The position numbers and the translations under genes are program-made. Below, one piece after another: positions 10,702-31,700 of a DNA stretch of 64,000 nucleotides. Under the pieces are notes generated by a model. That model was given only the letters and a program-made list of their open reading frames with translations, was not told the origin of the DNA and did no database searches. Origin of the DNA: Tubulanus polymorphus (lineage: Eukaryota; Animalia; Nemertea); contig NC_134036.1 of assembly GCF_964204645.1 (NCBI RefSeq), positions 1,736,001-1,800,000 of the forward strand. The letters run 5' to 3'. Numbering within the stretch: the first letter of the stretch is position 1; every line of letters starts with the position of its first letter.

Positions 10702-10761
10702 TTAAAATGCAGGCTGAAGTAGGGACTGAGACATCAGAGAAACATCTTCCTTGACTCGACA
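10702..10761 (-). CDS. cpo: Probable last coding exon, [19 protein letters not shown]
   Basis: Very strong polypyrimidine tract TTTCTTTGTTTTCTTTTTCAATTTCAG; phase 0; TAA at 10704-10702. Confidence 0.8.
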   Translation of the reverse strand, partial: CRVKEDVSLMSQSLLQPAF

Positions 10762-22700: not shown

Positions 22701-25700
22701 ATTTTCGGTATACTGTAATGCATTGAACCTTGACATATGTTGACAAGGCATTCGATGCCTTAATAATTACATTATTGATAGTATATTGTGTGCGGCTTGC
22801 TGATATTCATAATACAGAAAAACTGGTATTAGAAAAAGGTTTCTGGTACTGAAACAGCTTGAGATGGATCTTCAGATTAAACAAGGTCCGGACACCTACC
22901 TACCTTCCTTTCTCCTCCGGGAAACCGCAGTTGGGCTTTTCTTTTCGTTGGACCTGTTCAATAACTTTGTTCCAAGATCCATCCCTTTAACTATTTGCAC
23001 AAGTGGGACAGGGATAATTTTAACTGTGGCACGGGTAATCGATGGACAGTGAAGGGAAACAACAATCGGATTTTTCTCTTCGTTGGACCTGTTGCTTTCT
23101 AGAAATCCGAAATCTACGCTTCAACAAGTTCGATAACTTTGACGTTAAGCGGGACAGGGATAGCTTGGACGTGGTACACGTAATCGATGTTACTAACTCT
23201 CATGAATTGATGAATACTTACGGCCGGCTAATGGATGTGGAATTAAAGTTGGATGGGTAGCGGCTGGTTGTGGAGATTGTTGTTTCGGTTTCGTTACTTT
23301 GGTATTGCTCTTGGCGAATTCTAAACGTAACGTTTGTGGCAGGTCCGGGTCAAATCGAACGCCCTGAAAATATAAAAAGACACAAAAACATGAATTCCTG
23401 AAAAAACAAGTCAACATTGGATATGAAGAACAATCGAAGAAGAAACCCATCCTAAGAAGTAAAACTGTGATGTTGTTGATGATTTTGAAAATTAATCTGG
23501 CATTGATTGGTGCATTTGAGTCGTTTTAGTTTCTAATTCCAACTTTTTCAATTAGTCTGGCATCTTCATGGGATATTTTACGAAATATTTTGATTGAAAA
23601 TTTCCTCATCGTGTAAGGTCCAACATTTGACGTGGACAAGTCGTGATGACACCAACAAGAACAACCCAGCATTGAGTGGCATCTGATGAAGGCTTAGTAA
23701 CTACAAAGCAATATCTACATTGCTCAGGGCCCAATGTATGAAAAGCTTCAAGCTTAAAGTAGTCAAGTTTGAATATTTGCCCTCGTTGAAAACGATAGGT
23801 AATCAATAGCAACTGAATGAAAATATCTCAGTTTAACTTTTTCGTGAAACTGGACTCAGGAAAACTTGGGTAATCTCTACAGCTCTTCTTTCTTGCGGGT
23901 TTCACTAAGTGGTTGACACATGCCGCAGTGTAAATAGCAACAAGTAGGGATGAGTACTGAAGTGTTATTCGATTAGGATAACTGAGCTGAGATTGCCGAA
24001 ACTAATCTACCCAGTCGACACCTGCGTCCCGAGGCAAAATAATCAACTTGGTCGACCGTAGCGTTCTCGTTACCAGAGCGATAATTAACGTTCAGACGTT
24101 TTAACTTCATCAAAGGGAATATTGTCTAACCGTTAATAGTTCGTCGTCAGGCAACCGACTCCATTCTCAACGGGGTAATGAAAAAACCGAGCGCGGAAAT
24201 AGCGATAGAAATATATGGGGCCGACGACGAACGCGCGGAGAAGAAAATAGGATCGTACGTGACGTGTTAATCTGATTTGCATTTTAAAGAAGTTTCGACG
24301 TTTTCTGGGGAGCGCTTTATCATTAGAAACATTAGCTCTGTGGTATTCGATCCTGTGGGCGTCATCTTCAACATGCTTGTACTGTGAAATGTCTAATGTC
24401 TGGTGTTTGTGGTTCATGTTCAATTAAAAATGTCCCAAGTGAAGCACTGGATACGTTTAAAGTGCGGATGATCATAAATTTGAAGAATGGTTATGAATTA
24501 TCGAACTTCTGCGTTGGTCGGTCATTGCGACTGAAAAAGTGATGCGCCTTCTTCTTCTTATTGGCTTTTTGAATGCTGAACCTCCATCAGATTACTGACC
24601 CATGTAACACTACCCAGTTCTATGGCTTACCTGTAAATCTTGTTTGGCAGACTCAGCTGCTACACGTGAACTGAACGTCACGAACCCAACAGGCTGAAAT
24701 TGAGAAATAGATTTCGTTAAATTACATTCACAAAAAGAAATCATTTTCAGAATTATTTTCAAAACTTTTGTAATGATTATAAATTGAATAGTAGCGAGAA
24801 ATGAAGCCCCACCCCTTAAGAGATCTGTCAATCATCTTTTCTTCGAGTATTGATTTTAGATAAATTTGAATATTCAAAATAAGATTTAGTTTTTTAAAAT
24901 CTGAACTTCAGTAAGATATTAATAAGAAATTGCTGCCATCTGCCGAAGAATAATCGAACTACCAACTTGTCGTTATCTGGTTGTTGATTTCTATCGACAG
25001 ATGGCAGCACTAGTCGTTTCGTGAAGGAATTCAGTGATGTGACTGAGGTGAACAAATGACGCGTGAAGGAACGCACACGTTATCTTGGGTTCATTTATTT
25101 CGCTGCGAAGTCCATCAGATGGCTGACATTTTTGTTGGACCATCTTCTCTAAATTTTGGAGGGTATTCGAAATTCATGAAGTCAATTGGTGGTGAAATTC
25201 ACTAGCTTTTTACTTTTGGTTCTAAGATCGAACGTTCAAATTATTTCGATTATCGATAAGAATAAAATTGAAGGTAGTTTGGAAATTGGGAGGTATAGGT
25301 AACGCGGACAACTATTTCATCTGTGAAGTAAATTCGGGGAGCACGACGATAAAATTTAGCGAAAGAAGCGGAAATTACATTTATTTGAAAAAAAAAATAT
25401 ATATATATATATACTGCTATATTGAAAATGTGTGGGAAAACCATGCACAACACAAACACATACGTCACACGTAAGCATGCAATTGAGGAAACAATGGATT
25501 TTAATACTACCCGTTCACTGCGGACTGCACTTAATCTCGACATTAATAACTTACTTAAAAACTCAATCAGCATTCCAGATTAAAATCAATTTTGATTAAT
25601 TCAGTTTTTTTTCTATAGTCGAGATTATGATAGAGTCAATGGCTTTTCCGACTCCAGCATATATCTGGCTTGTTGACAACACAATGATGGTTTATTTTGA

Positions 25701-28700
25701 CTCGTGGTGGTAGATTTCATTCCTTTTTTGTTGAACGTTTTTTCAAACAACAAATCTTAATGGGTTCGAGAATAGAACACTGATCTGTAACGGAGTCATT
25801 CTTACTAAAAGAAAGGTTACCCATTCCGACGCTTTCCATTAAATCGAGTCACGGGAACTCAAGCAACTCGTGGCGAATTTCATCTTTTTTAAGAACGTTT
25901 TTAAGACCGTTTTTTGAAAAATAAATCCTAACCAAGTCGAACATGGAACGAATGTCGATAACAAAAGGTAACCCTCCCCTTCCATGGGTTTATCTGAACT
26001 CGAGAGCAAGAGCATCAACCTATCCTTCACAATTCGATTTCCGATCACTGAGAATAAACTCGGTGTATAAATATCGAAGATTCTTCTCGCTCCAATGGAA
26101 AATAATGGGATTTTATATTCGATGACGTCGTCGCTATTGGCGACACACGAAAGGAGAGGCTCGTTTATCTAATACACACGACCACACCCAAAAATATACC
26201 GTTAACTAGATTCAGCATTAGATACTCAGCACGTGTATATAATAATTTTCCAGTATAGAATTACGTAATTCAGGAGTTCATCAATATCAACTGAATAAAC
26301 GTGTAAAAGTTTGTATTGATTTTTAATTTAAATTCTAATTTAACTAAATATCTTTTATGAAACCGTATTAATAATCATTTTCCAGTATAAGTTAATGATT
26401 ATGGTTATGGTCAAAGGATTTATCAATTTGTATTAATTTTTTAATCAATATTAACGTTTGATATAGATGGTGATATAGGTGATATGTTATTGATGGTAAG
26501 AATTTATACCAAAAAAAAATTACTCATTTAAATAGCGATTTTTTCATCATAATTCATTACTATAAAACAGTTACTAATAATGATATTATGATATTTTAGA
26601 ATTTATTAATAAGATTGTCTATTCTGCAGATGGAATTCTTGATATATACAATATCAGTAAAAAATAAAATGATAAAATGATAATAAATCATAGGCAGATA
26701 GATAATTCTGTACGAATTTTCAATTGTATCCAAATCCACAAAAGTTGGTGTTTCTAGTAGGTTTACAACTAAGACATAACCAAGAAAAGCATAGTTTTTT
26801 CATCGATTTTCAACCAATCGATGGAAGGAGAGATGAAATTGGAAGATGAATACAGAAAGCATAGATTTTACCACGAGCAGTTTGTAGAAACCCAAGTTGA
26901 CATCGATAAGGAGCTTCAAGAGACTAACTAAGATTTGGATCTACAGAAGATTCGGCCACAGAAAGCATAGATTTTTTAAGAGCAGTTAAAATGGCTGCAG
27001 TATCTGATATTTCACACGAACATGATTATATGATATATCTAAGCGAAAGGAAGTCTATTTTTTTTAAATTTCGATTAAGATGGGACAAAATGCCTGAACT
27101 AACAACACAAATTTCTAGAAATACAATTTTCATTCCACTACAAATTAAATTTAGGATACCAGAAAAAAAAGGAAATTGGAATATGTAAATTGAGTATACA
27201 ACGTAACGTCTAGTTTTACGAAAATAATGATAGAACTGACTGCATGACAAATTTAGACATTCATAGAGGCACATACGAAACGGGACGTAACCAGTCTCAT
27301 ATAGATGCAGGGAATTACGAATAGTAGCGGGAACCAGTCCATATATACGGGAGTGTATACATTGTATGATTTGCATTCCTTACACCAGAGGGCGGGAGTT
27401 CACGGGATAATTCATTTTATTGATATGCATTCCTAACACCAGATAGCGGGATTCTAACGATGAAGATAGAGACCAGGCGGTGGCGCCCCTAACGGCTCCA
27501 CTTGACCTTGAAACAGACGTAAGTTGGATACGGCGGCCTACGGTTACTTACCGACGTGCTTTTGCCGTTTTTGCCCGTTACTTTGAGAAGTGAACCTTCG
27601 TAGCCCTGAAAAAATGTACAAAGAGGCGACGGAAACGTCGCGGTGAACGAACAACATTGATTGAAAACCAAAATCGTTGAGGGGGGTGGGGTGAGTTTGT
27701 TGTTAGAGGGAGCAATGAAGGACATGTTGCACCTCGTGGCTCTACAGTTGTGAATAGGTTAGATTTAATTACATCGACTTCGAATTCGTTGATTCAGTAG
27801 TCGGGATATCACTCAATAGAAATCAGATTTAGTTTGTTTTGATTCGAAATTCAAATTCAACCGCTACAACTGTAGAATCACGGCGGTCCCTGGTGGCGAA
27901 TTCTGATCGGTTGTTAGTCGATATGCCAGCCTGCCTGCTGCGGCAAGTGAGGGGGTGAAGTGACGACAATATATTCTCTGATTGAACGGTGGTGATGCAT
28001 TGTATGTGATCACACCCGGGGTGACGCGCACCTGACTGCAGCGACGCGCAAAAAACCAGCATGCAACGCGCGTCGCGTCGTCAGGGCATCGTGTGGCGCT
28101 AGAAAAAAACGAACAAAAAACTATAAAAAAACACATCTAGAATTGTTTTTTTTTCTGCGCGCTGGTGCCGGTTTCCGTGGTGATTGTTATGTCACGTGGT
28201 GTGCTCGTAGTGAACGCGATCGACTGTTGCCACGAGTGACGGTTGCCACGGGCGACGCTGTCTCTACTCACTGCATTGTTTTTGCCTGTTTTACCCATTA
28301 CTTTGAGCAGAGCGTTCTCGTAACCCTGAAAATAACAACATAAACAACGCCCCCTGCTGGTCAGTTCAACTGTCTTTTAAGAAACCATGCCTACTACTGA
28401 ATATAAACAGCTGGTAACGCCCCCTAGTGCAACCAAAATAACGATCTTTTAAACGAGGGTACCCTTTGGTTAACCGATGTTTTAGCACGCAAGGTTAGCA
28501 TATTTTGCGAGATAGAGTCGTGTAATTCTTTAGGCAAACTGACCATTAAACATAAAGAAGCGCCCCCTGGTGACTGCCCTTGCGGTAATCGGTAAACACT
28601 AATCTCATATCAGATAATGATACGCCCCCTGGCGGCGAGTAATTAATTACTATCTATGGTTTAGAGGGGAACGACATAATAAAACTAGGTCGACCAATGC

Positions 28701-31700
28701 GCCCCCTGGTGACAATGACTAATTAAATTATCCCGCTACAATACTTTTCGTGTCCCGAATGGAGAAATGGAAACTGCTAGAAATCGAGGGGGGTCGGGGA
28801 TAATTAGAGCTTTCACTAATGAGAGAGGACAAACGTACTTATTATCAATACACAATCAGTCTACATATACTGCCCGTATTGATATACCTGATACCGACAG
28901 GTAACCATAGTAACGACTGCGTCGGCGCGCAATGGGGACTAGTTACAAATTTATTAGTTATGTAAATACGTAATTCGAGTATAAGCCAATCAGATCGACT
29001 GGTTTATCGGGTGTGATCAAACTGCTAGTGTTTGTCACGTCGATAAGACCATCTGGGTTAATGAAGGTATCAACACTTTCTTTTTGTTTTCGATGGAAAA
29101 ATGTGTTTATTTTCACATCCATTTTCCTCTCTGCATTTCATCAATAAGTGATCAATTTCATTCGGATATTTTCTCCAGGATAACGAAGTAATTTCTGCGC
29201 TAAGAAAGTATAATGAGTTTTAAAAGAATAAATAGATTTTACTAATCTTAATTTTGTTTGCACAAAAAATTATTGCAAATTAACATTGCGGTAGACTGTC
29301 ATCGTCTTAAATTTTATCGTTTTAATTTCCATTTATTTGCGAGGAGAGCGGGGCTGAAATAGCGTCGCACGAGTGTTGAATATTTAGAAAAACATTTCGA
29401 ATCATAGCCCCGATCTTAACCAAGTATCATCAGAAAAAAATTGTCACTTCATCTTGGGAAAATATCAACATAAATCTCTACCGACAGAAAGAATACATTT
29501 CATTTTGGGAAAGAAATGTTCGAAAACTGTTAATTTTTCAAAATATTAATTTTTACCTTATAAGCCCTGAACAGAAGGTAAAGTTCTCGTGGTTTTGCAT
29601 CCATTGGTAATCCGCTAACGAACAACGTTCGTACCTAAAAATAGACGAAATAAAAACTATATTTAGAAACAGATTTTAATCGAGCAATTAATTCCTAAAT
29701 TCAGACCGTATTAAGCTCATTATTCGGTTCTATAACCAATTTAACAACTTAAGACCAGCCTAAACTCATATTTTGTTCTATTACCAATCTAACAAGTTAA
29801 GACCAGTATAAGCTCATTTTGGTTCTATAACCAATCTAGTAACTTAAGACCAGTCTAAGCCATGTTGGTTCTAAAACCAATCTAACAAAATACAATCCCA
29901 TGGCCGGTCTTCAGTGAAAAATCATGTAACACAATCTAACGGTATAAACCTTCACGATAGTACAAGTCATTATCTTTATACCAGAGAGCATATATTCTAC
30001 TTCGGAAAATTTCATGAAAAATTCATACGAAATTGAAACTGCCTATTTCCCCCTTTCCCTCTCTTTCTCTTTCTCTCTCATCTAGTGTTGACGTGATAAT
30101 GTGGCAATGTCGTGATTTCTAAGAGCTTCTCCGACGTCGCCGGGGAGTCGTTAAATACGTTCGCAACTTTTCCGTATCGGGAATTAATTACTTCGTTGGA
30201 AATTATTTAATTAGAAATTGATGCGCGATTCATTTAAAATTTATGAATTCGTCGATTCATCTGCGCGTCGTTTAAGTAACGAAATATGGCTTTAGATCGT
30301 TATTTAATCAAACTTGCGACGTTCATAATTTCCTCGTCGAGAAAAATATCCGATCAATTCTGCCGTTCTGATTATTTTGATATTCGACGATGATTTTTCT
30401 TCGGTTCGGATTTTAGAAATTAAACACCCCGAATCGCATTAGCTAGCCCTAGCCAAGCAACTGGCCCTAAACTGCCCAAACCAACGGCTACCCCTTACGA
30501 GAACTCGTATAAAGCCAAGGCTAGTCAAAAACCCTACCATTTACTGGAAAGGGACCCCGCCTTTCGGAGACCTCAATCCCCATGGGCACTGACACCGATA
30601 TTCTAAACTGGTATTCAACTTTTAATTTACTTCACTTAAACGTTCATTATAACTCAAACCACATTGCATTGAGGATACTGATTATGATTCACGTATATAA
30701 AATATAAGATCCGTTCGATCCAAGCCATAAGGACGTGGCGCCATCTGCCAGCTACGTATTTAACTAACACTCGCCGTAAAACAAACATTCCGATACGTGC
30801 TCGGGGGGAAACGAACGACTCAGTCGCGCGGCCTAATTATATTTAATAATTCATCATATCGCTGTAGGTAACCACAACAATGGTCACGTCTTTCCGGTCG
30901 TCATAGGTAACGAGGGAGATTATCAGGTTTCCTAATAACGGGAAGTAGGCAGCGAAGAGATGTTGAGATGATGACTGATATAAAAGCAGCCAAGAGGTCG
31001 AACTAAGAATTCCGCGGCGAAGGGATCATCACGAATTCGCTGATCGTCAGATGTTACTGGAATGTACCAACTTAATAATACTAATAAATATCTTCTATAT
31101 GAAATTTTAAAAATAAAAAAAATAATCAACGTCTTGTATTGTCGTCACTTAATCGTACAATTTTCGAGTATCTTCGGTTTTCAGAAAAAGAAAATGTTCA
31201 TTTGTATTTTTTCCAACTCGCCGGTCATTTTACTAGATTTTTTAAACATCTACTTTATTCCAGACCTATTTCCAATCCGTTTCAATATATTTCGTCTGAA
31301 AATTGTAGTTCAGTTACCGAGAACTAAGAAATATTGTTTTCGGAATAACATTTGTCCAACTCGAACCGGGAATCTAACCTGAACGGCTCATTCATTATTC
31401 GTGACTAAGTAAGAACCGGATTAATTCGATTTAACCAGTCTTAACATAAACCAGGTTCAACACTGCCTTCATTACTTCGTTTTTCGAATGGCAAAATATG
31501 TCAGGTTTTCGCCGAGACTATTTTTAACTTTTTGAACAATAGCGGTGCTGGTTAACTTATACCCTACGACACTGATTCAACTGATCTCATGAGAGAGGAT
31601 GTTCCCACCAATCTAACCGTATACCCACCACCACACCCGTCCATCCAGCCGTTAAACAGCCGAGCACAATTTAAGACAATAGCTTATGCGTCATCGCTGA

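Follow-up and report, generated by a model that had tools for sequence, protein, structure and literature searches.

[quoted passage not shown] In a stretch of 64,000 nucleotides from the nemertean Tubulanus polymorphus (NC_134036.1, positions 1,736,001 to 1,800,000; referred to as the window, in which all positions given here are counted), a gene of this family harbors two versions of the exon that encodes beta2 and the beta2-beta3 loop of RRM1. This locus raises the question of whether the second version, exon A, is a maintained coding exon, whether it is used instead of the canonical exon B, and what such a swap would change in the RRM. The reading we favor, with a probability of roughly 70%, is that a tandem duplication of the 18-codon exon preceded the divergence of nemerteans and molluscs and that both copies have been retained as coding exons ever since. 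Transcripts would normally use either A or B, so that the two resulting RRM1 versions would differ only within these 18 residues, and, judged from a nematode structure, the swap would alter how the 5' guanine of GCAC is read. In that case, an exon conserved across two phyla would replace the guanine-contacting part of an RRM and thereby supply a natural, testable pair of versions, differing in specificity, of a protein that acts as a master regulator of splicing.

A homologous exon pair in RRM1 of a couch potato/RBPMS-family gene

Re-reading of the window returned both exons as initially annotated: each is intact, 54 nt long, in phase 0-0 and bordered by AG/GT splice sites, and the two share 11/18 amino acids and 37/54 nucleotides across a distance of 666 nt (Table 1). 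As also claimed, four residues common to A and B (G1, E3, L6 and G11) are encoded by codons that differ synonymously and at the third position only. A repeat search put the length of the duplicated segment, splice sites included, at 68 nt with 74% identity; beyond these 68 nt, the flanks of A and B did not align, matching the earlier impression that the flanking introns lack visible similarity. The ends of the neighboring exons, i.e., the E1 donor at 29557 and the E3 acceptor at 24693, were likewise found where they had been placed. When B was compared to all 18-aa stretches of the whole window in six frames, the best match apart from A (11/18) reached 7/18. The two neighboring exons therefore share length, phase and detectable homology, by which mutually exclusive tandem duplicates are recognized.

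Table 1 Exons and other features of the locus (positions in the window) and A-type segments of related species.
Feature	Position	Strand	Remarks
RRM1 exon E1 (beta1 + helix alpha1; 26 aa)	29557..29634	minus	read and translated; phase 0-0
Exon A (alternative; beta2 + beta2-beta3 loop of RRM1)	28325-28272	minus	ttttcag/GGT...GCA/gtgagt; read and translated, 18 aa
CAC-rich stretch, candidate RBPMS-family binding site	28122..28271	minus	just downstream of the A donor; 8 CAC, 2 GCAC in 150 nt
A-B intron	27606..28271	minus	666 nt; too long for steric exclusion
Exon B (canonical)	27605-27552	minus	ttttcag/GGC...TCG/gtaagt; read and translated, 18 aa
RRM1 exon E3 (beta3 + alpha2; 21 aa)	24631..24693	minus	read and translated; tblastn
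RRM1 exon E4 (beta4 + linker)	23222..23363	minus	exon-level protein search (47 aa) leads to couch potato/RBPMS family
A-type segment, oysters and mussels			18 aa; 16/18 identical to window A
A-type segment, unionid			GYETALLKMMGKPGKNNS
A-type segment, veneroids, Dreissena, Mya			19 aa
A-type segment, scallops			21 aa
A-type segment, abalone			GFENGLLKVMGKPGKNNC
A-type segment, octopods			17 aa
A-type segment, Lineus longissimus (nemertean)			GYESSLLKVMAKAGKNNA; 14/18 to window A

The host gene, which is the single copy of a couch potato/RBPMS-family gene in the genome, was characterized by searches that were run exon by exon, with database proteins bearing identical flanking exons standing in for a spliced model of the window. 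E1 is 100% identical to the protein P0271 and, as far as the two align, to the T. polymorphus RefSeq protein P0296 (tblastn). The closest counterpart is the couch potato-like gene of Lineus longissimus, the same gene in the same phylum, whose isoforms X1 (XP_064645689.1) and X2 (XP_064645690.1) are identical to the window in E1 and E3, and X1 also in exon B; both are computed RefSeq models, and the gene spans a range of 134 kb. The Lineus isoforms match the solved structures 5BJR, 5DET, 5CYJ and 2M9K with E values of 1e-36 to 1e-39, and the conserved N-terminal RRM is thus close to the solved RRMs of the family. [quoted passage not shown] In MEC-8, the dimer interface is formed by Asp41, Lys43, Arg45, Glu46, Tyr48, Leu49, Leu50 and Arg52 (PMC5311487); in the alignment, a 13-aa stretch of E1, which contains the interface residues of helix alpha1, is identical to MEC-8. 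With the protein P0005 from Owenia fusiformis as the query, the closest proteins were of spiralian origin (nemertean, annelid and mollusc) and not from arthropods, by which an arthropod host is rejected.

P0296 (LOC141914044), annotated with a single isoform, could be placed on the individual exons of the window with 96-100% identity, down to position 10705. Its exon B is identical to that of the window and of Lineus X1 (P0193). As P0296 holds B only, exon A is unannotated in T. polymorphus, and our analysis adds a coding exon to this gene model. The first residue of P0296 is a Met inside E1 (29557-29604; MDAKPRELY...), while its relatives possess about 30 further N-terminal residues; the 5' exons of the gene are therefore probably unannotated as well and located above 29634. 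Contigs from three DNA-like runs of T. polymorphus displayed polymorphisms within the introns and none inside A or B, which is uninformative for exons of 54 nt, and one small run that is possibly RNA gave no match over 24400-29900.

Age and conservation of exon A

According to the initial annotation, no such exon pair is known from Drosophila cpo, nematode mec-8 or vertebrate RBPMS. This was true for the arthropod, nematode and vertebrate members we retrieved, all of which lack it; but the pair is present in RefSeq entries of a nemertean and of molluscs. In Lineus X2, the A-type segment GYESSLLKVMAKAGKNNA takes the place of B, in contrast to T. polymorphus with no annotated A isoform. Among molluscs, A-type exons occur in bivalves, gastropods and cephalopods, in isoforms named couch-potato-like or 'U1 snRNP A-like'; those of Saccostrea echinata (X2, XP_061191054.1) and Magallana gigas (X9, XP_065944117.1) are identical to window A in 16/18 positions. 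As in the window, A lies upstream of B in the molluscs, with a similar intron layout (locus L004); unlike the window, A ranges from 17 to 21 codons (cephalopods, veneroids, pectinids), and many models include both exons or skip both. Outside Mollusca and Nemertea, no A-type exon was found among the arthropod, vertebrate, nematode, annelid, brachiopod, rotifer, bryozoan, echinoderm and cnidarian matches, although missing annotation does not equal absence. The A/B pair as alternative isoforms is already on record in RefSeq for Lineus and molluscs; new here are exon A in T. polymorphus, the cross-phylum orthology with its statistics on selection, and the placement of the swap on guanine-reading residues. 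In the literature, we found neither a published description of the A/B exon pair nor a structural or biochemical study of an A-type RRM1 (Met at 65).

For a direct comparison at the nucleotide level, we used the bivalve-like genomic locus L004, which reads E1, A, B, E3, E4 in the same A-then-B order as the window. Window A and L004 A are identical in 16/18 amino acids and 77.8% of nucleotides (E 3e-9), with pS 0.96 and pN 0.10; for the B exons of the same two loci, pS was 1.0 and pN 0.10. Alignments of the window with L004 or with the spiralian locus L005 (ENA ERZ22147071) were confined to exons, and no alignable sequence was present in the introns. Saturated synonymous changes along with few non-synonymous ones indicate that A has been under purifying selection equal to that on B since before nemerteans and molluscs split. 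Exon A is thus an ancient orthologous exon and not a decaying copy, and the sequence comparison bears out the earlier view that the pair arose by an old tandem duplication and has been kept by purifying selection.

The same data bear on the alternative that exon A is a silent relic in T. polymorphus, intact by chance or because of recent disuse, with only B being spliced in. While the single B-only isoform of P0296 fits such a scenario, that model itself looks incomplete, given its start at an internal Met of E1. In addition, the frame and both splice sites of A are intact, 16/18 residues have been kept in common with bivalve A despite saturated synonymous sites, and Lineus, the other well-annotated nemertean, uses A. 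We therefore regard a silent relic as highly improbable.

Several further features were noted at these loci. The intron lengths of the window between 29557 and 24693 (E1-A, 1231 nt; A-B, 666 nt; B-E3, 2858 nt) resemble those of L004:4628-9716 (about 1301, 705 and 2834 nt) despite the unalignable sequence. L005 carries a third kind of upstream duplicate with 23 codons (L005:4514-4582; GYSSSLLKITAKQPPKLQHLPNC), in which Thr is kept at position 10 and which lies 1409 nt ahead of a B exon identical to window B. In Candidula unifasciata, the partial model P0051 contains a divergent A-like exon, GFETGLLKIMDKNIITDNDNY, at L002:10001-10063, and no B-like exon was found within the 16.7 kb before E3 at this locus. 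Most likely, P0051 is either a partial model or a copy that has diverged; in the latter case, it may be a gene copy that retained only the A lineage.

Use of the two exons and the choice between them

Substitution by tandemly duplicated, homologous exons is a known class (PMC9741552, PMC9013439). The pair described here resembles this class in that two ancient homologous exons lie next to each other, agree in length and phase and swap one structural element of a domain; it differs in that we found no enforcing mechanism for the cpo pair and that the annotation of relatives includes co-inclusion. How the exons are used was assessed in related species. In L. longissimus, the RefSeq isoforms X1 and X2 are both 360 aa long and differ at 7 residues, all of them in the A/B exon. 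X6 is also of A-type, and each of the six Lineus isoforms contains just one exon of the pair. Two de novo assembled Logan contigs read E1-A-E3-E4 (L006 from SRR30522647, 1500 nt; L007 from ERR3342472, 1389 nt), and so do two ENA proteins; among the de novo assembled transcript representatives, four had A only and none had A+B. A-only and B-only mRNAs or models in L. longissimus and many molluscs support the claim that the gene yields two RRM1 versions.

The picture in molluscs was more complex. Among 134 RefSeq isoforms, listed from ten 90% clusters, 49 were B-only, 39 A-only, 38 A+B and 8 had neither exon; as Gnomon merges junctions into models, these counts do not represent abundances. The A+B models within this census belonged to Magallana, Mytilus, Ostrea, Haliotis and Octopus, and further ones beyond the 134 counted were seen in Argonauta and Babylonia. 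No A+B form occurred in the isoform lists of Saccostrea, pectinids and Dreissena. A-to-B junctions probably exist in molluscs, and given the A+B models strict exclusivity is not established. The proposed mutual exclusivity of the two exons consequently agrees with the Lineus isoforms, but not with the 38 A+B models from molluscs, and in its strict form is only partly supported. Models that join E1 straight to E3, namely P0008 and the eight mollusc RefSeq isoforms (e.g., Mya arenaria WAR29486.1), would be without beta2 while keeping the dimerization helix.

Exclusivity had originally been deduced from the assumption that inclusion of both exons, or of neither, would break the fold. An AlphaFold2 model of an A+B RRM (P0158:31-142, alignment A2) retained the RRM fold: beta2 was formed by residues 31-38 within A, and residues 41-63, comprising the rest of A and all of B, appeared as a loop with pLDDT under 50. 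This prediction is weak evidence against a broken fold, and together with the A+B and neither-exon models in molluscs it leaves that assumption unsupported in the form stated.

These observations also bear on a different view, in which A and B are independent in-frame cassette exons and A+B is a regular product, with one copy forming beta2 and the other a long loop. The mollusc counts (38/134 with both exons, 8/134 with neither), the fold predicted for the A+B form and the negative outcome of the search for a mechanism based on steric exclusion, NMD or conserved RNA structure (see below) are all consistent with it. However, both exons together occur neither in the six Lineus isoforms nor in the Saccostrea, pectinid and Dreissena lists, the de novo transcript representatives comprise four A-only and zero A+B forms, and the mollusc numbers count Gnomon models rather than abundances. 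Taken together, we consider regular co-inclusion unlikely and favor a gene that normally takes A or B.

If A or B is normally taken, the choice has to be made somehow. The A-B intron makes steric exclusion impossible, and the AG-free zone ahead of B measures only about 125 nt, so that exclusion by steric hindrance or by a distant branch point is ruled out by the distances. As all four combinations of A and B remain in frame, NMD is unable to act. Thus, the initial annotation was right in stating that neither steric clash nor NMD can enforce exclusivity. Inverted repeats flanking the exons (I17, I21), which could loop out A or A+B, are 15-17 nt long with mismatches, unconserved and, by our estimate, at about chance level for 5 kb; within the A-B intron, a hairpin rich in GC (about 28031-28085) folded no better than shuffled sequences (z = -0.84). 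We therefore found none of the known enforcing mechanisms (steric or branch-point exclusion, NMD, competing RNA pairings) at this locus, the introns of which are unconserved relative to L004 and L005. As no structural mechanism enforces the choice, exclusivity would be a tendency and not absolute. The pair is a clean example of ancient homologous exons for which regulation, and not a mechanical constraint, appears to account for exclusivity.

A possible hint at such regulation lies in the CAC-rich stretch following exon A. Within 150 nt downstream of the A-type exon, CAC occurs 8 times in the window, 6 times in L004 and 8 times in L005, compared to intron means of 1.8-2.7 (1.8 in the window). 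As 3% (window), 14% (L004) and 4.5% (L005) of intron windows reach the observed count, the enrichment is modest in each species. This sequence pattern hints that a protein of the RBPMS family, perhaps the one encoded by the gene itself, may act as a regulator. The choice between A and B would then be made by trans-acting splicing regulators, which may include the cpo protein itself, acting through the CAC cluster downstream of A.

Guanine recognition by RRM1 and the surroundings of the pair

Proteins of the RBPMS/couch potato/MEC-8 family bind tandem (G)CAC RNA. In the structure of MEC-8 RRM1 with AGCACA, the guanine is read by the hydroxyl of Thr65, which bonds to guanine N2, and by the carbonyl or hydroxyl of Ser73; Lys63 can bond adenine, and CAC is read by Phe34, Phe77, Glu109 and residues 110-116 (PMC5311487). 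Replacing the G lowers the affinity of the cpo RRM 7-14-fold (PMC5311487). [quoted passage not shown] Exon position 8, equivalent to Lys63, is the same in A and B. Position 10, equivalent to Thr65, is Thr in all B-type variants retrieved across Metazoa except one (tick, KMNT), and Met in every A-type variant found; the upstream exon of L005 has Thr, so that Met would not be universal if this exon is an A orthologue. At position 18, equivalent to Ser73, the two nemertean A exons encode Ala and those of oysters and mussels Ser, with Cys or Asn found elsewhere. The CAC-reading residues are located in other exons and are unaltered by the swap. From these positions, we infer that an A-type RRM1 would keep CAC binding and dimerization, but would lose or alter the preference for the 5' guanine.

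Taken further, the pair might constitute a spiralian-specific switch of Cambrian age, in which the Thr65/Ser73 version reads G and the Met65/Ala73 version does not, with the protein steering its own switch via the CAC cluster. If true, an RNA-binding protein would retune its own specificity through autoregulated homologous-exon substitution. We regard this extended version as rather doubtful and advance it only tentatively.

The same residues bear on the suggestion that the swap is mainly a phospho-switch, in which Ser/Thr phosphorylation sites of B are missing from A. B indeed contains T10, S16, T17 and S18, compared to only T13 in window A, and the activity of RBPMS is regulated by phosphorylation (PMC9723635). 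However, the phosphosites reported in that study are Thr113 and Thr118, which adjoin the RRM and belong to another exon, and the A exons of oysters and mussels retain the final Ser. Moreover, the residues that are missing from A match positions in direct contact with RNA, namely the guanine-contacting Thr65 and Ser73 of MEC-8, and a change in these contacts explains the loss of Ser/Thr better. A phospho-switch, for which we found no supporting evidence, hence appears very unlikely, and we favor altered guanine reading as the consequence of the swap.

Finally, the surroundings of the pair contain conspicuous repeats. Co-oriented copies of a GCGCCCCCTGGTG-like motif are located just upstream of exon A (28347-28713) and also at 27883-27897 and 28925-28939. 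The window contains CGCCCCCTRG in 6 copies, with 4 of these lying within 28418-28709, compared to 0.03 expected. On the gene strand, motifs of this type read CCACCAGGGGGCG, which resembles the CTCF core motif. In addition, the summed depth of DNA contigs rises to 10^3 to 2x10^5 at 29552-29900 and 24400-24583, compared to about 30 elsewhere, with many rearranged joints; these stretches have the appearance of a repeat present in many copies, either dispersed or in tandem (unit of about 55 nt, ttagattggtt...ggtcttaa), beside E1.
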